Virus record (IMG/VR): IMGVR_UViG_3300005537_000001
Coordinates: 1 to 64,000 of that record
Direction: 5' to 3' (one strand)
DNA: 64,000 nt
The position numbers and the translations under genes were made by a program. Numbering within the stretch: position 1 is the first letter of the stretch; each line of letters starts with the position of its first letter. Shown piece by piece: positions 4,722 to 59,347 of this stretch. Below the pieces are notes generated by a model. It had not been told where the DNA came from. It made no database searches and saw only the letters and a program-made list of their open reading frames with translations.

Positions 4722-5780
4722 ATGAGATTTACAGAATTTTTGATCGAAGCAAAGGAAGCCCAAACTAAGGTTAGCCTTAAGCTACAAATGATGCTTCCAC
4801 TTACGGACGATGAGATAAAAGCTTCACTTAGGGGATTAGTTAGCGGTGAGGTTCGACTTCATGATTCTACCAGCGTGAAGAAGCAGTCTAGCGGCTGGAA
4901 CATTCACGCTGATCCGACCATTGGCGAGCACGGTGCTGAAATTATTTCTCCAAGGCTATCTCTAAACGATTCGCTTCACGCGCTCGCTAAAATATGTGAT
5001 TGGATGTCTGAGCAGGACGCCAAGACAAACGATTCTTCATCCCTCAAAATCGACATCAGCATTCCCAACATCGGTGAAAAGCTGGATCCGGTAAAGTTGA
5101 TTATGCTAATGGATGATCACGCGGCTACGGCGCTCGCAAAATACGCCCACAAATATTCAGAACCACAGATTGAAGTGATAGCGCAAAAAGTAAAGCTGAC
5201 CGGAAAGCTGCCAGAAACTCTTGATGACATGGAAAGAGATGCTCATAAATTTCTAGGAATTCGCTCTGGGCAAAATAAGCTTTCGATGGGTATCCTAGAG
5301 CTGCGAATTGATGGTGGAGCTGGTTATGAAAAATCACCATCTGACCTCAAGAAGAAAATTTTCAAGCTGGTAAACGCGGTAGAGGTTGCCTGCGATCCAA
5401 TGTCTGAAAAATCAGAATATTTGAGCAAGCTCTTGGAGCTGTTTAACTCAGCTAGTGACGATGAGCACGTTACCAAGAACGACATGCACAAGATACCCGA
5501 AGATCTACACCGGCTCTACAAGCTTAACGCTCAGGTAAATCATGCCTGGAAGATATTCGATAAAGATCAAATTCACGGTGACGCGAGACACGCGCTGATT
5601 ATCATGATAAATATAGCTCTGAAGACGGTTAAGGAATTTAAAACGTCGCTTAACCTACAAGAGAAAACGCTGTTTAAGCGGCTTGCAAAGCAGGTAGCTC
5701 TCCAGACATCAGATGTTGATTCGTATTATGGACACGATGACATGGCGAGATTAAACTTCAAGAAAGAAATAGGTGTTTGA
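4722..5780 (+). CDS. Amidoligase-2-like fold protein, probably degenerate; candidate virion-internal protein
   Basis: WNIHADPTIG...AEIISPRL and LELRIDGG resemble putative amidoligase motifs. N-terminus is MRFTEFLIEAK. Confidence 0.55.
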   Translation: MRFTEFLIEAKEAQTKVSLKLQMMLPLTDDEIKASLRGLVSGEVRLHDSTSVKKQSSGWNIHADPTIGEHGAEIISPRLSLNDSLHALAKICDWMSEQDAKTNDSSSLKIDISIPNIGEKLDPVKLIMLMDDHAATALAKYAHKYSEPQIEVIAQKVKLTGKLPETLDDMERDAHKFLGIRSGQNKLSMGILELRIDGGAGYEKSPSDLKKKIFKLVNAVEVACDPMSEKSEYLSKLLELFNSASDDEHVTKNDMHKIPEDLHRLYKLNAQVNHAWKIFDKDQIHGDARHALIIMINIALKTVKEFKTSLNLQEKTLFKRLAKQVALQTSDVDSYYGHDDMARLNFKKEIGV

Positions 5781-14674: not shown

Positions 14675-15139
14675 ATGAAACCACTGCAGCACCCCCTAGA
14701 ATCAGTTTTCAACATGGGTGAAAATGACATGGATATTGAAAAAGAATATGGTATGACTGAAGCTTCACAGCAGCAGGTAACGCTAACTCCGGTTGAAGCA
14801 CCACCAGACGTCAAGGACGAGGATGATAAGCTTATCGAGGGCAACATTGACCGCGTTTACGACGCCGCGATGGAAGCGTTCAACACGCAGACAGCCTTCA
14901 TTGAAGTTATCGACCCAAAGTTCGCGGCGCGCAACGCCGAAGTAGCCGCAAACTACCTCAACATCGCTCTCCAGGCGGCGGTGGGTCGGTCAAGGGTAAA
15001 AACTGACCGCAAGCGAGCTAACCAAACATTCATCCCGTACGGTCAACCAGGTGGTAAAACTACCAACAATCTCATAATTGCTGACCGCAATGAGATCTTG
15101 AAGATGATTACGGTTGACAGCACTGAAAAGAAGCTGTAG
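14675..15139 (+). CDS. Probable terminase small subunit (gp16-like)
   Basis: Helical protein with ARNAEVA and C-terminal TTNNLIIADRNEILKM, reminiscent of gp16; size and position fit. Confidence 0.55.
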   Translation: MKPLQHPLESVFNMGENDMDIEKEYGMTEASQQQVTLTPVEAPPDVKDEDDKLIEGNIDRVYDAAMEAFNTQTAFIEVIDPKFAARNAEVAANYLNIALQAAVGRSRVKTDRKRANQTFIPYGQPGGKTTNNLIIADRNEILKMITVDSTEKKL

Positions 15140-15174: not shown

Positions 15175-15181
15175 ATAAATA
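15175..15181 (+). promoter_or_regulatory. Late promoter ATAAATA
   Basis: Recurrent motif in the intergenic gap. Confidence 0.6.
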
Positions 15182-15205: not shown

Positions 15206-17167
15206 ATGACATTTACGACTGAAGCCAAAAATCATCTAGGTGAACGTTCTTTCCAAACGTACGCTGCTTGGAAGCGCGCGTGCAGGGCGTTCAACCCGAA
15301 AGTTTACTTTGACGGTGATAATGACATCGCCCAAGCCATGGTTGAAGTTGGTGGCACAGGTGGGCAACATCGTTCTATAGGCGAATGGGATGGTGCTGAA
15401 GGTGTCATTTATTCTCATGCAGTTAGAGAAGATAAGGAAGATGTTCTATCTCTGCCAAGACTTGATGCATTTCTGGCTGGCACGCTCATTGAATCCGATG
15501 AGCTAAAGAAGGTAGCTGCTGAGGGTGATGATCACTCTAAGCGTCGAACTGCCGACAAGCTTGAAATTGGCGATGTCGTAGAAATTACCGGCAACGTTAA
15601 TTTCAAGGAACAAACCGGTGAGATAACCCGCTTCGGCAAGGACAAGCATTTTGTCGTCGTTCGCCTGTATAATGGTGGAGAGCACTCATTTCATTCCTCA
15701 GACGTCTCTGAAGCCGACCTCAGCCATGAGGCTCATGAAGAGGAAGACAGTGATGCAAATAAATTTTACGTTGCGTTTTATGACAACGCTGAAGAGCGTT
15801 CTTGGATTGGCGTAATTTCCAAGGAGCACGGTGGTAAGTGGCACGAGAAATCCTTCAAAGGTAAGCCTGAACTTCGCTGGGGTCAGACATACATGTCGTA
15901 CCTTACTCCAGACGACATCATGAATTGGATTCACAAGGACTATCACCGTGGTATTGAAATTGAAGGACCATTTTTCGACGCGCACGAAGCTGAAGAACAC
16001 GTTAAGCAGAACTGGGGTCGCATCGATGAGGCGGTAAAAGCTAAAACACCTTGGGCAGTTCTTAATTCAATCGCCAAGGATCACGGTAAAACCGGATTTG
16101 CAACGCTCAATTCTCAAGATGCAGCAAGATACGTTAACATGAAAAAAGCTGCTAAAATCGCTGAAGATGAAGAGGGTGAATTCGGGTTGATGACTTGCGA
16201 TGAAGCTGCGATGAAGCGCATCATCAACAAGAATCCGGATCTTCTTATCGGTGATGCCAAGAAGATGTTCAAGGCACAGGTAGCAGAAGCTAAAGATCCG
16301 CCAAAGGGAGAAAAGATATCCCTTATGCAGGCTTTTGGTTCTTCTGAACTAGCAGCCCTTGAAAAAGCTGGTATTCACCTCATCGAAAAACCATCATATT
16401 GGGAAGATCTCAACAAGCGCCATGCTGTTGATGAGCTCAAGCTGAAGCGTATCGAAAACATCATCGGGCACAAGCTCAAGGAATATGAAGGTTGGGAAAT
16501 TTATCCAACTATGCATGATGATGACATGCCAAAACATCCTCAATCCAGCGTTGCGAAGATGCCAAAAGAAGATATGTTCATCGTATCTTTCGGCGATGGT
16601 TCTGAGCGCTACCTTTGCGATCGCACTGGCGCTAAATCCTACATACGCTTTTGGGCAAAGATTCTTCCAGGAGTGAATGAAGAAACATTTACAAATTATT
16701 CTGATTGGAAGCAATCGGTACTTCTCTCACACCCAACCCAAGCCAAGAACATCAAGTTTCGCGGTAAGATGGAAGGTGAGAAGACAACCATTTCAGCAAT
16801 TGTCCCTGGACAAGATGCAATCTATGGAATTTGGGACGACGCGATAGAAGCTGGTAAGGTTCTCTCCGAAGCAAAGAAAGAATTTTCTATAAAAGCACTA
16901 CTTGCAGCCTTTGAAAAGCACGGTGCTTCTGCAAACTATGAAGTTAGCGAAGAAACTGAAAATTCTGCTAAATTGGATGTCTCAACATCTCGCGGGGATG
17001 GTACGCTAAAAATTACAGTTTCACCTGGCACTACTTACGCGCACATAATTGCTGACATCTCAATGCGTAGAAAGGGTAAAAGCTCGTTAAAATTTAAAAC
17101 AACCGATTCTCTCCAAAATATTGTTGATCAAATCGATGATGAAATTGACGGCTTGGTACATAACTAA
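15206..17167 (+). CDS. Multidomain hypothetical protein; candidate processed capsid-internal polyprotein
   Basis: Small domains, including a KOW/SH3-like unit and a duplicated F..Y..WK...G.WD unit, separated by xxE|A/E/S/D motifs. Confidence 0.55.
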   Translation: MTFTTEAKNHLGERSFQTYAAWKRACRAFNPKVYFDGDNDIAQAMVEVGGTGGQHRSIGEWDGAEGVIYSHAVREDKEDVLSLPRLDAFLAGTLIESDELKKVAAEGDDHSKRRTADKLEIGDVVEITGNVNFKEQTGEITRFGKDKHFVVVRLYNGGEHSFHSSDVSEADLSHEAHEEEDSDANKFYVAFYDNAEERSWIGVISKEHGGKWHEKSFKGKPELRWGQTYMSYLTPDDIMNWIHKDYHRGIEIEGPFFDAHEAEEHVKQNWGRIDEAVKAKTPWAVLNSIAKDHGKTGFATLNSQDAARYVNMKKAAKIAEDEEGEFGLMTCDEAAMKRIINKNPDLLIGDAKKMFKAQVAEAKDPPKGEKISLMQAFGSSELAALEKAGIHLIEKPSYWEDLNKRHAVDELKLKRIENIIGHKLKEYEGWEIYPTMHDDDMPKHPQSSVAKMPKEDMFIVSFGDGSERYLCDRTGAKSYIRFWAKILPGVNEETFTNYSDWKQSVLLSHPTQAKNIKFRGKMEGEKTTISAIVPGQDAIYGIWDDAIEAGKVLSEAKKEFSIKALLAAFEKHGASANYEVSEETENSAKLDVSTSRGDGTLKITVSPGTTYAHIIADISMRRKGKSSLKFKTTDSLQNIVDQIDDEIDGLVHN

Positions 17168-17168
17168 A

Positions 17169-17693
17169 ATGACAACATTCAAACAATTTATGGCAGAAGC
17201 TGAGGGCGAGAAGATGGCGGTTGCCATGGCTCAAAAGATGCTAAATTCTATGGTAGATGAGCTACCTCATATTCCAGAGCAAATCTCTCAAGGCGCAAAG
17301 CACCACGGTCACAAGTTCGTCGACACTGCGAGTGGTCCATGGGTAGTAACCCACTTCAAGAACGGTGAAAATGAGTTTGTCAAGGTTGAGGCACCTAAGG
17401 GGTCAATGAAGCATCCAATGTTCTTCATCCCTCGCGGTGCATCCAACATGAACGAAGGTGCCGTAAAGAACGCCATCATGGACATCATCGAGAAGGCTGT
17501 TAATCAAGCTGATTATAGCCACGATTACCAGTCAACTCTTGATACCATAAGTGATAAGGTGCGCAAGTTGGATAAAAATAACTTGACAGCTGGGATGACG
17601 CAAAAGCAAATGCGCGAGTTGATTAAGCCAATGTACGCTAAAACCGATCATGACTTAATCATGCATCACCGCAAACTAAAGAGCAAGGGTTAA
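17169..17693 (+). CDS. Hypothetical protein with a capsid-targeting-like N-terminus (MTTFKQFMAEAE)
   Basis: ATG 1 nt after the upstream stop; the N-terminus resembles the T4 CTS MKTYQEFIAE. Confidence 0.6.
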   Translation: MTTFKQFMAEAEGEKMAVAMAQKMLNSMVDELPHIPEQISQGAKHHGHKFVDTASGPWVVTHFKNGENEFVKVEAPKGSMKHPMFFIPRGASNMNEGAVKNAIMDIIEKAVNQADYSHDYQSTLDTISDKVRKLDKNNLTAGMTQKQMRELIKPMYAKTDHDLIMHHRKLKSKG

Positions 17694-17702
17694 GGTACCA
17701 AT

Positions 17703-18884
17703 ATGAAATTACTTCAAGAACTCTCCAAGATGACCGAGGCAGCCGTTATGGGCGTGCTGATGGACACTATCTGCAAGGCGATAGATGCCGCAAAGTGCAA
17801 AGGTGAATCCTACGAACAAGCGCTAAAGAACATCGCGGCAGAATTTCGTAAGCTTGACAAGCATGATTCGTCAAAGATGTCAGATGAGGCTCTCAAGGAT
17901 CTCATCATGTCATTCTACAATCAAGATAAACACCTTAGCGCTAACGACAACGTTGTTTCATACCGCGATACCGGATTCTCAAAGGGTCAAGGTCCCGGAG
18001 TAACTCCAGGCGCAACCGATGGTATCGTAAACAACCGCGTCAATCAAATTAAGGAAGAAGCTGGCGATGATCAGGCAGATGTAGCGAGAGAATTTGAAGC
18101 TCTCATGAAGAAACACAAGAAGAGCATGAAGCCGGCTGACGTCAAGAAATTTGAAAAAGCTTTTGACAACAAGAACAAAGAATGGCTCCATATCTATCAG
18201 CATGACGAATCAGAAGATGAGGATGCTGAGGAGGCGCAGCGAGAAAATCTGCGTGATGCCCTGGGTGAACTGGAGGGCGTCCTCGACGATCTCAAGCATC
18301 ACCTCAAGCTAGCTGAGGAAGAAGGTGTTGAACCAGCTCCGAAGCGCGACCTCAAGGCTGAGGCAATCGGCATAGCGACGGCATGGCTGAATAGCAACTA
18401 CAAAAAGTTCAACCTCCCGCTGAAGGTTCGCCGCGTTCCTACTTCTGGCAAGTATATCATGACCACCGTAGTTGCGAACAAGGGTGAAACTCCAAAGAGA
18501 ATCTTCTTGAAGGTTCTCGATGGTGAGGCAAAGCAGGTATCTTCCAAGGAGTGGAAGATGCTCGATGAAGCTGACATCAGCGCCTCTGGTGGTGATATGG
18601 CTGGAGCGAGTGGCTCACTAGACAATCAATTTCAGGGTGGAATTCCAGTCGGCGCCGCCGATCCCCACAATGGTCCACAGGGTGGTGAAGTTGCTACACC
18701 GCCACCGTCAAACAAGCCACCAGCTGCAAAGGCTCCATCCGGCCCAGCTACTCGCACGATCGCCAAGGGTGGTGACTTTCGAGTAGACCTTGGGCAAAAT
18801 GAACAGGTAAGCATCATTGACGGCAAGGGTAACATTCGCCTCTCAATGCCGATGGTTATCTGGAAAGAACTGACTCGCCAATAA
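17703..18884 (+). CDS. Acidic/charged hypothetical protein; candidate capsid-internal protein
   Basis: Starts MKLLQELSKMTEAA; internal IKE|E, LAE|E and LDE|A motifs. Confidence 0.55.
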   Translation: MKLLQELSKMTEAAVMGVLMDTICKAIDAAKCKGESYEQALKNIAAEFRKLDKHDSSKMSDEALKDLIMSFYNQDKHLSANDNVVSYRDTGFSKGQGPGVTPGATDGIVNNRVNQIKEEAGDDQADVAREFEALMKKHKKSMKPADVKKFEKAFDNKNKEWLHIYQHDESEDEDAEEAQRENLRDALGELEGVLDDLKHHLKLAEEEGVEPAPKRDLKAEAIGIATAWLNSNYKKFNLPLKVRRVPTSGKYIMTTVVANKGETPKRIFLKVLDGEAKQVSSKEWKMLDEADISASGGDMAGASGSLDNQFQGGIPVGAADPHNGPQGGEVATPPPSNKPPAAKAPSGPATRTIAKGGDFRVDLGQNEQVSIIDGKGNIRLSMPMVIWKELTRQ

Positions 18885-19315
18885 TGCGTAAGCTACACTT
18901 CAAGGAGTTTGTTGAGCTTAGAGATAGCTTGTTGGCTATAGCTGAAGCTCATGGCGCTGATGTCGTCGATCGAACACCTGCCCATCACAAGCAGGAAGTT
19001 CCGCTGTACGTTCCAGGTGGAGCTACGGTGGTTGTGCTAAACGACAATGTTACCCCATTTGAAGTAGTTATCGAGGCCATCATGCATGGCACCCACCTGA
19101 GTGAAGCTGAAGCTACAAAGCGAATGATGGCGGCACACAAGAATGGTTGGGCTGCGGTAGCAAGCTATGGAAGTCGAGATCTCGCAGAGACGGTAGCTCA
19201 CAAAATTGAAGAGCACGCTGCCCACAATCCAAACTATGATCATTACAAGCAGCACACCGGTCATCATGGGCCATGGCCACTCACCTGCGAAGTAATGGAC
19301 GCAGACCAAAAATGA
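18884..19315 (+). CDS. clpS: ATP-dependent Clp protease adaptor ClpS
   Basis: VVVLNDNVTPFEVV...A...M..AHKNG.A.V...SRDLAET, the ClpS core. Confidence 0.85.
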   Translation: MRKLHFKEFVELRDSLLAIAEAHGADVVDRTPAHHKQEVPLYVPGGATVVVLNDNVTPFEVVIEAIMHGTHLSEAEATKRMMAAHKNGWAAVASYGSRDLAETVAHKIEEHAAHNPNYDHYKQHTGHHGPWPLTCEVMDADQK

Positions 19316-19497
19316 AAACAACGTTCGCTCAATTCCTCCAAAATGATTCTGAGGAAGAAAATAAAGTTCCAAGCCTGCTGAAAAAGCAGGCTGGACCACC
19401 TCTTGGCGCGCTTGATAAGCTTAAAAATAAAGTGAAGCTTAAGCTGGGCCACAAACCGATGTTTCTCAAAAAGCAGGCAGAAAGCGCAGGTGACTGA
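19312..19497 (+). CDS. Small basic protein (MKTTFAQFLQNDSEE...)
   Basis: ATGA overlap with the clpS stop; CTS-like start. Confidence 0.5.
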   Translation: MKTTFAQFLQNDSEEENKVPSLLKKQAGPPLGALDKLKNKVKLKLGHKPMFLKKQAESAGD

Positions 19498-19753
19498 ATT
19501 TCAGGTAGATGAAATTGGCATCCACAGCGACATGGACAAGCCAGTTCGCGTGAAGGTCAACGTTACTGCCGCTCGAGTAGAACATTACGGGGACGTTGTC
19601 GAAGTCATGGCCCGCGGTGCTATCGAACGTTACACCAAAAAGCACGGATCCCAACCATCAGATTCTCAGATTGACCACCTCAAGGCCGACCTAGTGCGCG
19701 CGCTGGTGATTCAACGAGACGTTCTCGGTGCCCAAAGCTTGGAAATTACCTGA
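19490..19753 (+). CDS. Hypothetical protein
   Basis: Overlapping start; coding-like composition. Confidence 0.55.
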   Translation: MTEFQVDEIGIHSDMDKPVRVKVNVTAARVEHYGDVVEVMARGAIERYTKKHGSQPSDSQIDHLKADLVRALVIQRDVLGAQSLEIT

Positions 19754-19771: not shown

Positions 19772-19778
19772 ATAAATA
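19772..19778 (+). promoter_or_regulatory. Late promoter ATAAATA
   Basis: Recurrent motif upstream of the terminase operon. Confidence 0.55.
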
Positions 19779-19833: not shown

Positions 19834-20256
19834 ATGGTTAGAATAAGTGAAGACATTGATGATGTCTTGGGTGAAGAATGCATGCGAATTCTTCTCGCGC
19901 GTAATTCAGATATGTTTCGCGGCGATGACATGCCCGGCCCAGTATGTCTCGTGGACAATGCTGGTAACGTAAGGAACGATTCTTCAGATGTTGATGTAAT
20001 TCCACTTACAGCCTACTCAATCAAAGTTCCTCTCCCACTTAACAGCGATTCGCTTAACGTAATTTTCAACATCAGCGAATTTGCCGAGAAGCGAACGTTC
20101 ATTCACTATTATTCGTGCGCTAAGCGCCCGCACGTAAGCGCTGGTGATGACGTAGTGGTGGTAGATCCCAACACTTTTGAACCACGCAAAAGAGCTGTTG
20201 ATGAGGTGAAAGCGAGAGAGCTAAACTTTGCGATTTTTCGGTTTGGGTTGTCATAA
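19834..20256 (+). CDS. Hypothetical protein
   Basis: SD AGGAG; stop overlaps the terminase start. Confidence 0.6.
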   Translation: MVRISEDIDDVLGEECMRILLARNSDMFRGDDMPGPVCLVDNAGNVRNDSSDVDVIPLTAYSIKVPLPLNSDSLNVIFNISEFAEKRTFIHYYSCAKRPHVSAGDDVVVVDPNTFEPRKRAVDEVKARELNFAIFRFGLS

Positions 20257-21884
20257 TGCCGGCCAATCCGTTTATCAAGCGTGCCCATTCTGAAAATGAA
20301 TACACGCCAGAGCTAGTTCAAGAGCTCAAAAAATGTCAGGCCGATCCGGTTTACTTCATCAGAAACTACGTTTATCTGCAACACCCGGTTCGCGGTAAGC
20401 TTATTTTTAACCTTTACCCGTATCAAGAAGAGCTCGTAAGAACGTGCCAGCACAACAAGCGCGTAATCGCTCTTATCTCACGTCAGATGGGTAAAACTCA
20501 AACGATTTCGATGTACCTTTTGTGGTACGCGATGTTTCACAGCGATAAAACCATAGTCATAGCATCCAAAAATAACGGCCACGCTATGGAAATCATGGAT
20601 CGCATTCGCTTTGCCTATGAAGAACTTCCAAATTGGCTCAAAGCCGGGTGTAAGTATTACAACAAGCACAACATCGAATTTGATAACGGATCAAGAATTA
20701 AATCTGAAGCTACAACTGAAAAAACCGGTAGAGGTCTTGCAGTTTCCAAGCTGTATTTGGACGAATTGGCGTTCGTAAGCCACAAGATTCAAACGACTAT
20801 GTGGCGATCTCTTGCCCCAACCTTGGCTACCGGTGGTGAAGCAATCATTTCATCAACCCCAAATGGCGACACGGATTTATTTTCTACTCTTTGGCGAGGC
20901 GCTAACCTTAACAAGGGCGCCGAGCATGCCCCAGATGCTAAGGAAATTATCAAGACCGAAAATGGAATGAATGCGGCTAACCTATTCGTTCCACTGTTCT
21001 TCCCATGGAATTTGCATCCAGAGCGTGGTGAGCAATATCTCAAGGACATGATCGGTGAGCTTGGCCCTATAGGCTTTAGGCAGGAAGTTTTATGCGAGTT
21101 CATTTCGTCACAAGCCATGCTCATTGACTCACTCAAGCTGTCATATCTCAAACCATCTCGTCCAATAACTGAAAACATGGGTTTCAAGATATGGAAGGAA
21201 AATATTGGTGGGCGTGGTAAAACATATCTTGTTGGTTTGGATCCAGCTACCGGAAACAGCAAGGATTTTTCAGTCATCGAGGTGTTTGAATTTCCTAAGA
21301 TGGAACAGGTGATGGAGCTGAGGTTGAACACCGTCAGCATTCCACTCATCTACGCTAAGCTTAAGTGGCTGTTTAGATTCCTACGAAAGCCAGATGCTGG
21401 TAAGGGTAGAGCTGAAGTAATTTGGTCATTTGAGCGCAACGGCGTTGGTGAAGCTTTGGTTGCGATGATTCAAAACGATGATTCGCCGGATGGCGGAGTC
21501 TACATAGACGGTGTTGATCTCTACAATGAGAATCCGCTGCGCCTCGGTTGCTACACGACTGGTAAATCCAAGATGCTTTCGTGCATGCAGATGAAGAATC
21601 TTATCGAGAAAGGCGCTACTGGAATTGTCATTCATTCGGATCTTTTGCTGTATGAGCTGCAAAATTTCGTTTCGCAGGCTGGCACGTTTATGGCTAAGGA
21701 CGGATGTACCGATGATGCTATCTCAGCTCTTACCATCGTCATGAAAACTTTATCGCGACTTGCGGCATACGATGAGAAGGCTCGAAAGGTAGTTTACGAA
21801 TCGGTAGATCCGGATTCTGATCATGTTGATCCTGATACACCACAGGACCAGTATGGTGATGAGCCCGTTCCCATCTTTGTTTAG
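20256..21884 (+). CDS. Terminase large subunit (gp17-like)
   Basis: DPVYFIRNY, Walker A SRQMGKT, Walker B LYLDELAF, SSTPNG, nuclease GLDPATG..D.S and TDDAISA. No intein. Confidence 0.95.
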   Translation: MPANPFIKRAHSENEYTPELVQELKKCQADPVYFIRNYVYLQHPVRGKLIFNLYPYQEELVRTCQHNKRVIALISRQMGKTQTISMYLLWYAMFHSDKTIVIASKNNGHAMEIMDRIRFAYEELPNWLKAGCKYYNKHNIEFDNGSRIKSEATTEKTGRGLAVSKLYLDELAFVSHKIQTTMWRSLAPTLATGGEAIISSTPNGDTDLFSTLWRGANLNKGAEHAPDAKEIIKTENGMNAANLFVPLFFPWNLHPERGEQYLKDMIGELGPIGFRQEVLCEFISSQAMLIDSLKLSYLKPSRPITENMGFKIWKENIGGRGKTYLVGLDPATGNSKDFSVIEVFEFPKMEQVMELRLNTVSIPLIYAKLKWLFRFLRKPDAGKGRAEVIWSFERNGVGEALVAMIQNDDSPDGGVYIDGVDLYNENPLRLGCYTTGKSKMLSCMQMKNLIEKGATGIVIHSDLLLYELQNFVSQAGTFMAKDGCTDDAISALTIVMKTLSRLAAYDEKARKVVYESVDPDSDHVDPDTPQDQYGDEPVPIFV

Positions 21885-49918: not shown

Positions 49919-49947
49919 TGTACATTCATTCCTAAATAAACTATAAT
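49919..49947 (+). promoter_or_regulatory. Early promoter TGTACA-N17-TATAAT with a late TAAATA (49933-49938) inside its spacer
   Basis: Both motifs seen directly. Confidence 0.6.
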
Positions 49948-49966: not shown

Positions 49967-50440
49967 ATGAAGCTGAAAGAGCTGGTATCGAATAAGAAGA
50001 AAGGTCTTTACGTTGGGATGAGGGTTCTGGAACCATCCTGTTCTCAAATAAAGGAACACTGTCGCAGCGCCGGCATTCCAATTGCCGAATCGGCCGGTGA
50101 ACGACGCCTGCATACAACCGTTCTCTACAGCCGAAAACCATGCCCAAATTTCGTAGCTGAACAAGCTATAGTTCACGGTGCTGAATTTATCTGCTATGAG
50201 CTCTTCAACAAGAGGCATGATTCAAACCAAAAAGTTTTGGTCATCAAGCTTAACGCACCGACGATAGTTGCCCGCCATCTCACGTTGATGGCCGAACATA
50301 ACGCTACGTTCGATTTTCCGGTATTCACACCCCACATAACCATCGCGGATGGTTATAGCGGTGACATCAACTCACTTCCTACGATAAATTTTCCCATAAC
50401 TCTCGGCTTGGAATATTCAGAAGAATTGGATGACAAATGA
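49967..50440 (+). CDS. acb1: Anti-CBASS nuclease Acb1 / T4 gp57B-like 2H phosphodiesterase
   Basis: GLYV, HTTVLYSR, LV..L.....RH, ATFDF..FTPHIT and EY.E.L align motif by motif with T4 57B. Confidence 0.85.
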   Translation: MKLKELVSNKKKGLYVGMRVLEPSCSQIKEHCRSAGIPIAESAGERRLHTTVLYSRKPCPNFVAEQAIVHGAEFICYELFNKRHDSNQKVLVIKLNAPTIVARHLTLMAEHNATFDFPVFTPHITIADGYSGDINSLPTINFPITLGLEYSEELDDK

Positions 50441-51246: not shown

Positions 51247-51709
51247 CATAGGCGAAATAGCAATTGTAAGTGCCAAAATACTTACTGATTTTCAAAATGA
51301 TCATTCTGATAAAAACAAAAACAGAATATATGGATTTGCTTTTGATCATGCTGAGAAAATATATTTAGGAACGCAAGGTTGGAATGCAACTGATGGTCCT
51401 GTACCGTATGACGTATATAAAGGCAAATTTATTTACCGGACGTCAAAAATAGATTTCAGCAATATTTGTGCTGATATCAAATTGTCAATGGGTAATTCTG
51501 TATCGATTAGTTCAGATGAGTATGATTTTGGAAATTTAGGGCATAATTACAATTTTTTGGTGTACAAATATGTTGCTGATATTAATGGCGGATTCTCAGC
51601 ATTATATTCTGGCAAAATCTCTTTTCAAGATATATCCAAATATTTAATACCATCAAAAAATGCCGGCTGGTTTGCCAATTATGAGCAAATCAAATATTTG
51701 CTTTCATAA
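51215..51709 (+). CDS. AT-rich hypothetical protein; probably recently acquired
   Basis: 164-aa open frame in a conspicuously AT-rich tract; start uncertain. Confidence 0.5.
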   Translation: MILPRERSLRNIGEIAIVSAKILTDFQNDHSDKNKNRIYGFAFDHAEKIYLGTQGWNATDGPVPYDVYKGKFIYRTSKIDFSNICADIKLSMGNSVSISSDEYDFGNLGHNYNFLVYKYVADINGGFSALYSGKISFQDISKYLIPSKNAGWFANYEQIKYLLS

Positions 51710-51717
51710 ATAGACCT

Positions 51718-51909
51718 ATGCAAGAAACACTTCGCGACAAAAATGGTAAGGTGCTTGGATCCATCCGTGAGAGCGGCGGTATCATGAAGCTGTACAACGT
51801 TGGTGGTCGATTTCTCGGATCATTCGATAAAAGTTCCAACATCACGAAAGATGCTGGTGGCACGATCGTTGCTACGGCTGGAAATCTACTGGTGAGCTTG
51901 CTAAAGTGA
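51718..51909 (+). CDS. Small beta-hairpin repeat protein under a late promoter (ATAAATA 51706-51712)
   Basis: D..G..LG-type repeats. Confidence 0.55.
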   Translation: MQETLRDKNGKVLGSIRESGGIMKLYNVGGRFLGSFDKSSNITKDAGGTIVATAGNLLVSLLK

Positions 51910-58611: not shown

Positions 58612-58988
58612 TATCTGCAACTCTTTGTCTAAGCACGCTTCTCATCCTAGTTTGGACCCATCTTTTTGCAGACTTTTTCCTGCAGACAGACAAGATGGCT
58701 ATCAGCAAGAGCTCTTCTAACGCGTGGCTTTCTGTTCACGTTAGCGCGTACATCATTCCATTTCTTATTCTTTGTGGATGGAAATTTGCAGCTGTAAATT
58801 TCGTAGCCCACTGGCTAACCGACTTTTTCTCATCGCGCGCTACAACTAAGCTGTGGAAGCTAGGAGAGGCAGCTAACGCAGCAAAGCAACCAAATTCATA
58901 TCGTCATTGGTTCTTCACGGTAATAGGAGTTGATCAAGCTCTCCACATGACTGCTCTTATCTTGACAATTCCACTGATAGGATGGTAA
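58608..58988 (+). CDS. DUF3307-like membrane protein
   Basis: HLFADFFLQ, HVSAY, HWLTD, GVDQALH. Confidence 0.8.
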   Translation: MISATLCLSTLLILVWTHLFADFFLQTDKMAISKSSSNAWLSVHVSAYIIPFLILCGWKFAAVNFVAHWLTDFFSSRATTKLWKLGEAANAAKQPNSYRHWFFTVIGVDQALHMTALILTIPLIGW

Positions 58989-58990
58989 AA

Positions 58991-59347
58991 ATGAAACTTC
59001 ATCAACTTGTTGAAGCTGCGACACGCAAACAAGTCGCATCAGCCAAAAAAGTTATCTATGATTCTCTTCTTTGGCGAGTTAGCAGCTCACTACCTAGATA
59101 TTTTGACGTGGATGGTAAGCGAACAGAACGCACGCTTGATAATGGTGGTGTCAATGAAAAACAGGTAATGACTGAGTTTCTGAAATATCTCAGAAATATA
59201 AACAAAAGCGGTTCTGAGTGGAGCATGGACTTTGGGACAGATAGGTTAAAAACAGCGACAAAAATCCTAAAGGCCTGCAGGATTCTGGGATTCAATTCTA
59301 CTGAATTAGACGCAATCGAAAAATCAATCGCCCCTAAGGGAAAATAA
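58991..59347 (+). CDS. Hypothetical protein (MKLHQLVEAAT...)
   Basis: CTS-like start; lies within the repeat-flanked unit. Confidence 0.6.
   Translation: MKLHQLVEAATRKQVASAKKVIYDSLLWRVSSSLPRYFDVDGKRTERTLDNGGVNEKQVMTEFLKYLRNINKSGSEWSMDFGTDRLKTATKILKACRILGFNSTELDAIEKSIAPKGK

Follow-up and report, generated by a model that had tools for sequence, protein, structure and literature searches.

Candidate capsid-targeting leaders on a diverse set of late proteins in a jumbo phage distantly related to T4

The capsid-targeting sequence of bacteriophage T4 is the textbook means of addressing proteins to the capsid for co-injection, but few proteins are known to bear it; T4 IPI and Alt leave the head with the DNA and act in the new host. 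The sequence takes internal proteins into the scaffolding core, whereupon gp21 cuts the leader off (PMC5694885, PMC3012670), and every internal protein of the T4 head, including those of the core itself, joins the core by means of it (PMC5694885). In phages of the phiKZ/SPN3US type, many head-internal or ejected proteins are cut by the prohead protease at x-x-Glu and their propeptides are thought to target them to the prohead (PMC5694885), but these propeptides mostly exceed 100 residues and are not alike. In the literature searched, a capsid targeting sequence is discussed only for T4 and phages of the SPN3US/phiKZ type. Here, we analyse short N-terminal leaders resembling that of T4, centred on a block of five genes at positions 15206–19497 of a 64,000-nt window (positions 1–64,000 of the IMG/VR record IMGVR_UViG_3300005537_000001) and extending throughout the full record, hereafter G000.

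This record of 368,054 bp has direct terminal repeats and the size of a ‘jumbo’ phage and, judged by its gp21-type prohead protease, gp23-type capsid protein and portal, is a distant member of the T4 superfamily. Its large terminase (TerL) shares no more than ~42% identity with its counterparts in RsoM2USA, XacN1 and PA5oct, all of them jumbo phages, and the nearest cultured relative belongs to the XacN1/RsoM2USA group; all phage matches are below 60%, and a megablast search of the block region against 50,697 phage records returned zero matches. As in T4, the leaders are short and of similar sequence (T4 MKTYQEFIAE/A, MAKINELLRE/S and MELITELFDE; a slash outside brackets marks the end of a leader), end in hydrophobic-x-Glu and are kept on unrelated, fast-turning-over cargo, as in the hyperplastic internal protein (IP) loci of T-even phages; a protease of the gp21 family, a capsid protein of the gp23 family and a portal are likewise shared, and a late motif resembling TATAAATA appears to drive the genes. 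Unlike T4, in which fewer than 10 genes are tagged, the present phage would tag a predicted ~25–40; it is a 368-kb jumbo phage, its cargo includes recognisable enzymes and adaptors that are not counted among the known head proteins of T4 (ClpS, Acb1, an FMN reductase and GNAT acetyltransferases), its leaders fall into three length classes, and a conserved cargo block lies between the small (TerS) and large terminase genes.

We consider it likely that these N-termini are T4-type capsid-targeting sequences on head-internal proteins, probably removed by the prohead protease. The resemblance in sequence, the presence of a suitable protease, the apparently late context and the virion proteomes of relatives all fit this mechanism. 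Unrelated in other respects, the proteins would be synthesized late in infection with the leader as their N-terminus; it would draw each protein into the assembling prohead core and would be cut by the gp21-type (S77) prohead protease after its terminal hydrophobic-x-Glu, so that the mature protein would stay inside the head with the DNA. We infer targeting and cleavage in this phage and, from the analogy of T4 IPI and Alt only, that at least some of the cargo would exit with the DNA and act immediately in the new host.

The block between the terminase genes

Five consecutive late genes with T4-like N-termini had been described between a probable small terminase and the large terminase. The five ORFs are indeed present on the plus strand with those N-termini, their assignment as late resting on a promoter-like motif, and both flanking genes were corroborated by profile matches:

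14675–15139, plus strand: small-terminase-like gene (PHROG 445, terminase small subunit, E 1.3e-4), upstream boundary
15175–15181, plus strand: promoter-like ATAAATA of the T4 late type, 25 nt before the first block gene
15206–17167, plus strand: candidate cargo gene 1, several domains including a KOW/SH3-like barrel, 653 aa, shortened 6-residue leader MTFTTE/AKNHLGE
17169–17693, plus strand: candidate cargo gene 2, 174 aa, T4-IP-type leader MTTFKQFMAE/A (17169–17198)
17703–18884, plus strand: candidate cargo gene 3, 393 aa, 12-residue leader MKLLQELSKMTE/A (17703–17738)
18884–19315, plus strand: candidate cargo gene 4, 143 aa, ClpS-like adaptor, 21-residue leader MRKLHFKEFVEL...IAE/A (18884–18946)
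19312–19497, plus strand: gene 5, 61 aa, basic (pI 9.7), IP-like start MKTTFAQFLQND
19490–19753, plus strand: 87-aa ORF with a GTG start and no leader, last of the same putative late unit; the next ATAAATA is at 19772
20256–21884, plus strand: large terminase (Pfam Terminase_6N, E 7e-16; 42% identical to RsoM2USA TerL), downstream boundary

The block reads as a single late transcription unit, because ATAAATA elements occur at 15175 and next at 19772 and no plus-strand terminator-like site was found between 15175 and 19753; it would thus represent one late operon of head-internal proteins. A leader similar to the T4 capsid-targeting sequence and ending in hydrophobic-x-Glu is present on four of the five block genes as well as on two outlying genes, at 4722 (MRFTEFLIE/A) and 58991 (MKLHQLVE/A), the similar starts of which had also been pointed out and are confirmed.

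In alignments, the leader and its Glu junction are kept across the homologue families of the four block genes. About 29 of the 45 listed metagenomic homologues of 15206, most of them on long phage-sized contigs, start with a leader of the form M[KRN][LFM]xx[EQD][LI], and the junction-aligned members read ...E/AKNHLGE. An AlphaFold2 model of this protein (mean predicted local distance difference test score 71) has several confident domains, the first of which is predicted to begin at about residue 7, right after MTFTTE; Foldseek searches of PDB and viral libraries with the model recovered only Spt5/NusG KOW domains at low TM-score, and no function was therefore assigned. Gene 2 carries a leader of the T4 IPII/IPIII type (MTTFKQFMAE/A versus MKTYQEFIAE/A), comparable also with the MKTFKQFL start of the RsoM2USA virion proteins ORF89 and ORF132 and retained in homologues as MTTFKQFIVE/A and MISFKRFVIE/G; its longest ORF opens at 17121, and it is the ATG at 17169, the point at which the homologues start, that yields the leader. 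Neither 15206 nor 17169 matched Pfam or PHROGs, and the ESM Atlas held no usable match for 15206 or 17703.

The N-terminal domain of the 17703 protein and the C-terminus of gene 2 are paralogous, and Pfam and PHROG searches gave only a weak C-terminal PHROG match. In its family, 45 of the 55 retrieved representatives fit the leader pattern MxLLxELxxxxE followed by (A/G)A. The conserved leader with the N-domain and a ~45-aa C-terminal segment (…DEQVxxxDGxGxxRxSMPLVIWKQLxRQ) flank a highly variable middle, total lengths ranging from 71 to 702 aa. The C-terminal segment also occurs as free-standing small ORFs in the terminal repeats of XacN1.

The ClpS fold suggested among the tagged proteins holds for 18884: residues 48–115 match Pfam PF02617 (E 2.5e-15, 56 bits versus a cut-off of 23), and solved ClpS chains in the PDB match at E ~1e-4, with the LND..TP..V and H.NG pocket motifs aligning. 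Bacterial ClpS is the N-degron adaptor of ClpAP. The phage subfamily differs from it in having a leader and a conserved VIDRPPV...PLHVPGG linker instead of the bacterial N-terminal extension; in the 18884 protein, the aligned TPmeFV motif reads TPfeVV, with Met changed to Phe. The leader pattern is fitted by 51 of 83 homologues (MRIRELFEAPE, MKIDEILEAGE, MSSIKRYLDIVREAD...), in which it precedes a conserved VIDRPPV...EVPLHVPGGATVV core.

Blocks of leader-bearing genes fill the TerS–TerL interval in RsoM2USA (ORF254–258) and in the IMG/VR relative G001 (165.9–172.5 kb) as well, with differing gene content. Orthologues of the small-terminase-like gene (14675–15139) occupy the equivalent position in RsoM2USA, XacN1 and the loci L104 and L105. 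Directly upstream of it lies a pair of paralogues that is conserved in RsoM2USA and XacN1 and is also found in L104 and L105:

13757–14212 and 14199–14672, plus strand: two tandem T4 gp4-like head-completion genes (BLASTP to T4 gp4, E 3e-12 and 3e-16)

The TerL gene of G001 (L105 8731–9615 and 10076–11215) is split by ~460 nt, possibly an intron, intein or insertion, and TerL of Atu_ph07 is likewise annotated as two pieces, gp109 and gp110.

A leader class across the genome

Among the 511 genes predicted with a simple caller based on codon usage and ribosome-binding sites, on which the gene starts depend, N-terminal leaders form a genome-wide class of amphipathic sequences of 6–21 residues, in three length classes (8, 10 and 12–21 residues). 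They take three forms, MK(L/V)x(E/D)L(L/F)E, MxTFKQF(L/M)xE and the 12-residue MKLxxELxxxxE; examples with the following residue are MTTFKQFMAEA, MKLLQELSKMTEA and MKLHQLVEA. The tetrapeptide [LIVMF]xE[AGS] is sharply concentrated at one position, its Glu falling on residue 8 in 13 genes versus 1.9 expected. A fixed pattern, Phi-x-[EQD]-Phi-Phi-x?-E starting at residues 2–6, was scanned in seven genomes with one gene caller for all, with the following counts:

This phage: 23 observed, 2.1 expected, 11-fold, p 9e-17
G001 (IMG/VR relative): 13 observed, 1.2 expected, 10.6-fold
T4: 7 observed, 1.3 expected, 5.5-fold
RsoM2USA: 11 observed, 2.1 expected, 5.2-fold
XacN1: 8 observed, 2.2 expected, 3.6-fold
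phiKZ: 1 observed, 1.4 expected, no enrichment
E. coli (400 kb): 0 observed, 1.0 expected, no enrichment

The enrichment that the original prediction proposed to look for is thus evident, and it tracks the PF03420 protease: all five protease-bearing phages are enriched, whereas E. coli and phiKZ, in which neither short-leader enrichment nor a PF03420 match was found, are not. Looser patterns match 40 genes in the present phage versus 11 in phiKZ and 4 in E. coli, and because of these control matches a fair estimate from the sequences is ~25–40 true leader genes. The starts of the seven genes originally listed belong to this class, but as a measure of its extent they are an undercount.

A position-specific scoring matrix derived from nine seeds gave ~100-fold N-terminal enrichment over internal positions at scores of at least 12 bits, a test that is circular. 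Built solely from the present genome, the matrix ranked T4 gp24 (MAKINELLRE/S) first and Alt seventh among 221 T4 genes, but it missed leaders of the T4 IP type, IPII and IPIII ranking 34th and 35th; this fixed-register approach was therefore abandoned in favour of register-free fixed patterns with control genomes. Among the seven T4 genes matching the fixed pattern, four (IPII, IPIII, gp24 and Alt) encode known substrates of the protease; gp2 and gene 61.1 match too. Gene 61.1 has a capsid-targeting-like start (MKTFKEFIKED), and T4 Acb1 (57B) starts MMEFKDFSTG, resembling the start of the adjacent ipI (MKTFKEFTST); to our knowledge, lists of head proteins contain neither 61.1 nor 57B.

Leucine in the leaders is spelled by six different codons, and synonymous variation is free through residue 8. 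Since Leu codons vary and the upstream DNA is unrelated, the leaders are, as far as the alignments indicate, conserved and selected at the peptide level. Nucleotide-level repeats or mobile promoter cassettes were rejected as an explanation on account of the unrelated upstream regions, as was common descent of the leader genes: BLAST similarity is absent among most of them, and all-against-all comparison joins only small groups, through internal domains rather than the leader. Homologues in RsoM2USA, XacN1 or T4 are lacking for 37 of 48 leader genes, and most leader genes are also missing from G001.

The leaders are associated with a late-promoter-like element. Genome-wide, TAAATA has its positional peak 25–49 nt upstream of 54 gene starts, including those of tail-fibre-sized genes and of the prohead protease, and in 41 of 59 cases an A stands before it; the exact T4 late promoter TATAAATA was discarded as the element, with only 14 occurrences, the positional enrichment being that of the shorter (A)TAAATA. 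With ‘late’ defined by this promoter-like motif only, leaders are commoner among late than among other genes, contrary to what would be expected had the original prediction been wrong: 28 of 40 leader genes have the element or lie directly downstream of it, versus 106 of 471 other genes (odds ratio (OR) 8, p 2e-9). About nine genes have TAAATA just 10–14 nt before the start codon (window 51706–51720; G000 174046 and 238914), an arrangement that would produce leaderless or near-leaderless late mRNAs.

The head machinery that would read such leaders is encoded in the same genome:

G000 350868–352502: portal, gp20-type (phrog_213, E 1e-86)
G000 353295–353912: gp21-type prohead protease, Peptidase S77 (PF03420, E 3.3e-24, 83 bits versus a cut-off of 27)
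G000 358873–360141: gp23-type major capsid protein (PF07068, E 1.4e-94)

The capsid protein itself has a propeptide junction, HLQE/TAAAG (MIAE/T and MLAE/T in relatives), at which cleavage is predicted. A complex prediction of the prohead protease with residues 1–60 of the 17169 protein gave no answer and is evidence neither way. A second, short S77 protease paralogue of 130 aa (G000 346350–346742; L023:6350–6742) is 34% identical to the main protease over 119 aa and scores 16 bits against PF03420; diverged protease paralogues have reportedly been described in giant phages in work on SPN3US. A scaffold (gp22) homologue was sought at 357960–358847, which belongs to a PHROG of unknown function and has a high LxE density; it was kept as a candidate only.

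Virion proteomes of relatives and alternative readings

Evidence on where such proteins reside comes from two cultured relatives, RsoM2USA and Atu_ph07, which have a protease of the same family and leaders of the same types (MRLIDLLE and MKWHQLTE in Atu_ph07, MKTFKQFL in RsoM2USA) and whose leader genes were detected in virions, although their cargo genes are mostly non-homologous to those of the present phage. Ten abundant virion bands were identified for RsoM2USA (PMC8504454). Among the six without a structural annotation, two start with MKTFKQFL, namely, ORF89 (MKTFKQFLSES) and ORF132 (MKTFKQFLNTLMEA), both verified by coordinates and mass; given nine such genes among 489, the probability of at least two in six is 0.004. 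The band ‘ORF257’ was not used, because its published mass of 17.57 kDa disagrees with 19.65 kDa for locus tag 257; in the RsoM2USA genome (MG752970), this mass fits tag 247 (17.57 kDa) exactly, apparently a numbering slip in the paper. For Atu_ph07, all 140 rows of the electrospray tandem mass spectrometry (MS) table (PMC6102473) were mapped to the genome by mass and gene order. Here, 21 genes start M[KR]Phi..Phi.[ED], and the virion proteome contains 19 of them versus 121 of 817 others (OR 55, p 9e-14), a count that overstates independence since eleven of the 19 positives (gp53–63) are paralogues and a twelfth, gp408, looks related; nine other positives are diverse. Term searches found no remark on an N-terminal motif, propeptide or paralogues in the Atu_ph07 paper (PMC6102473), nor on processing in either this or the RsoM2USA paper (PMC8504454).

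The label can also be gained or lost independently of its cargo. The leader of Acb1 is present in our phage and in RsoM2USA but absent from the G001 orthologue (39% identity), the 12-residue leader of 199087 is absent from its 70%-identical G001 orthologue, and 207418 and its RsoM2USA homologue bear leaders of different types, while 174060 and its G001 orthologue both start MISFKQFL. Because some orthologues of tagged cargo lack it, the leader is, by these comparisons, a portable module. Taken together, the machinery present, the enrichment, the late operons, the conservation within families and the virion data from relatives argue for the proposal that a T4-type leader sits on a diverse set of proteins, and since the label marks virion proteins in relatives, capsid loading of the tagged proteins is most likely, with delivery alongside the DNA a possibility.

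Several observations count against this reading. The phage is a metagenome-derived record, known from its sequence alone, and the MS tables of its relatives report the presence of proteins, not the cleavage of leaders. In T4, known head proteins make up only about half of the pattern matches; lysozyme e, modA.2 and vs.6 match as well, so some leader calls in the present phage will be false. The residue after the leader is in many cases D, E, T or R, whereas it is A or S in T4 IPII, IPIII and gp24. Within the block, the leader of 15206 has only six residues and is atypical, and an 81%-identical relative of this protein (L104) has a different N-terminus without a leader. Gene 5 (19312) has Gln instead of the cleavage Glu at the expected junction and is the weakest member of the block set.

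Of the competing explanations, the one that survives best, though we judge it unlikely, is that the leader proteins serve only in assembly, as parts of the prohead core or scaffold comparable to T4 gp22, gp67 and gp68, and would be cut and expelled before DNA packaging so that nothing functional would be delivered. T4 core proteins, too, use the capsid-targeting sequence (PMC5694885), four small leader genes (352539, 355023, 356364 and 356635) lie among the portal, protease and capsid genes, and the 17703 family, conserved at both ends around a variable, low-complexity middle, is scaffold-like. Some of the tagged proteins, notably the small ones encoded in the head module and perhaps those of the 17703 family, may belong to the core and act in assembly only. 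Many others are intact enzymes or adaptors (ClpS, Acb1, the FMN reductase and the GNATs) with no obvious scaffold role; moreover, leader proteins are detected in mature virions of Atu_ph07 and RsoM2USA and hence were not expelled there, and a high LxE density is seen only in 357960 (5.8 per 100 aa), compared with 0.4–0.5 in the cargo genes 352539 and 362293.

Rather improbable, in our view, is that the leader is a tag for a different address, such as a late chaperone, a membrane assembly site or an outer virion structure (whiskers or fibres), in which case virion association would reflect external decoration. The authors of the Atu_ph07 study ascribed many unknown virion proteins to unusual external structures (PMC6102473), and MS data are blind to inside versus outside; nevertheless, the leaders resemble the T4 capsid-targeting sequence (MTTFKQFMAE versus MKTYQEFIAE) and end in the gp21 cleavage motif, they are found on proteins of the head-morphogenesis module, and their enrichment follows the gp21-type protease across the seven genomes. 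The notion that the shared start merely reflects a general property of N-terminal helices or of translation initiation (AAA or A-rich second codons) without any targeting can draw on the frequency of Lys as second residue in highly expressed genes and on T4 lysozyme (MNIFEMLR) and other unpackaged T4 proteins that fit loose versions of the pattern, but is already disfavoured and in our estimate highly improbable, given the lack of positional enrichment in E. coli and phiKZ under the same caller and patterns, the amino-acid-level conservation with free synonymous variation, the linkage to late operons and to virion presence in Atu_ph07, and the gain or loss of the leader as a unit on orthologues.

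Cargo and possible roles in infection

Proteins that carry the leader outside the block include the following:

4722–5780, plus strand: amidoligase-like protein, 352 aa, leader MRFTEFLIE/A
49967–50440, plus strand: Acb1, anti-CBASS 2H phosphodiesterase, 11-residue leader MKLKELVSNKK, with its own ATAAATA at 49932
58991–59347, plus strand: basic protein, 118 aa, leader MKLHQLVE/A, with the top matrix score in the genome
G000 356938–357513 (L023:16938–17513): NADPH-dependent FMN reductase, leader MPSATVSKKILTE/A, in the head-morphogenesis module with the protease gene on one side and the capsid gene on the other
G000 362293–362862 (L024:12293–12862): GNAT acetyltransferase, leader MLVRELLQE, in the head-morphogenesis module

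Acb1 is matched by Pfam PF23474 (E 4.4e-22, 79 bits versus a cut-off of 27) from residue 12 onwards; both HxT motifs are retained, LHTT and PHIT aligning with T4 57B. The amidoligase-like fold also suggested, that of 4722, fared less well than the ClpS fold: the Pfam match to Amidoligase_2 (PF12224) is weak (E 0.008, 16.5 bits versus a cut-off of 22), and what favours the assignment is Atlas feature matches to viral Amidoligase_2 clusters with a score of 0.93. The RsoM2USA homologue of this protein starts MKLIQKLSEL. The 58991 protein has no family match in Pfam or PHROG, and its start is ambiguous: the ORF opens at 58982, and 58991 is its second ATG. Further leader-tagged genes include 188357, encoding a zinc finger with a STAND-like NTPase, and a second, more weakly matching GNAT acetyltransferase candidate at 149540. 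Leader genes cluster at 143–153, 188–194 (seven consecutive genes), 206–208, 236–244 and 326–331 kb and occur in the head module at 352–364 kb beside the portal, protease and capsid genes, where 352539, 355023, 356364 and 356635 encode small leader proteins. A ~50-aa internal repeat or domain is common to seven otherwise different proteins of G000 (144543, 152564, 187966, 191342, 193465, 330962 on the minus strand and 365643), five of which (144543, 152564, 191342, 193465 and 330962) bear a leader.

The mechanism as such is already known from T4; what looks new is its apparent scale, its spread through the jumbo clade and the nature of the cargo, among which the leader-tagged, late-promoter Acb1 and the leader-tagged ClpS subfamily stand out. 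If packaged, Acb1 would be a pre-loaded anti-defence enzyme, and its leader makes the counter-defence role proposed for the tagged set more plausible. A broader possibility, which we put forward tentatively, is that throughout a T4-related jumbo clade (the present phage, its IMG/VR relatives, RsoM2USA, XacN1 and Atu_ph07), a portable label of 8–12 residues turns almost any gene into that of a capsid-loaded, co-injected effector. Our phage would then pre-load more than 25 such proteins, including active Acb1 and ClpS, counter-defence and takeover of host proteolysis would set in from DNA entry, before phage expression, and the leader alone would predict injected effectors in metagenomes.

Collectively, these observations indicate that a distant jumbo phage and its relatives apparently use the T4 label about ten times as extensively as T4 does, on proteins that include recognisable enzymes and among these a known anti-defence nuclease, and suggest that phages serving as sources of packaging tags for engineering could reach well beyond T4. 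If packaging is true, the leader would allow the injected effectors of uncultured phages to be predicted from sequence alone and would furnish a ready list of candidate proteins for counter-defence and takeover in the first minute of infection; it would also account for part of the large unexplained virion proteomes of jumbo phages, such as the 131 proteins of Atu_ph07.

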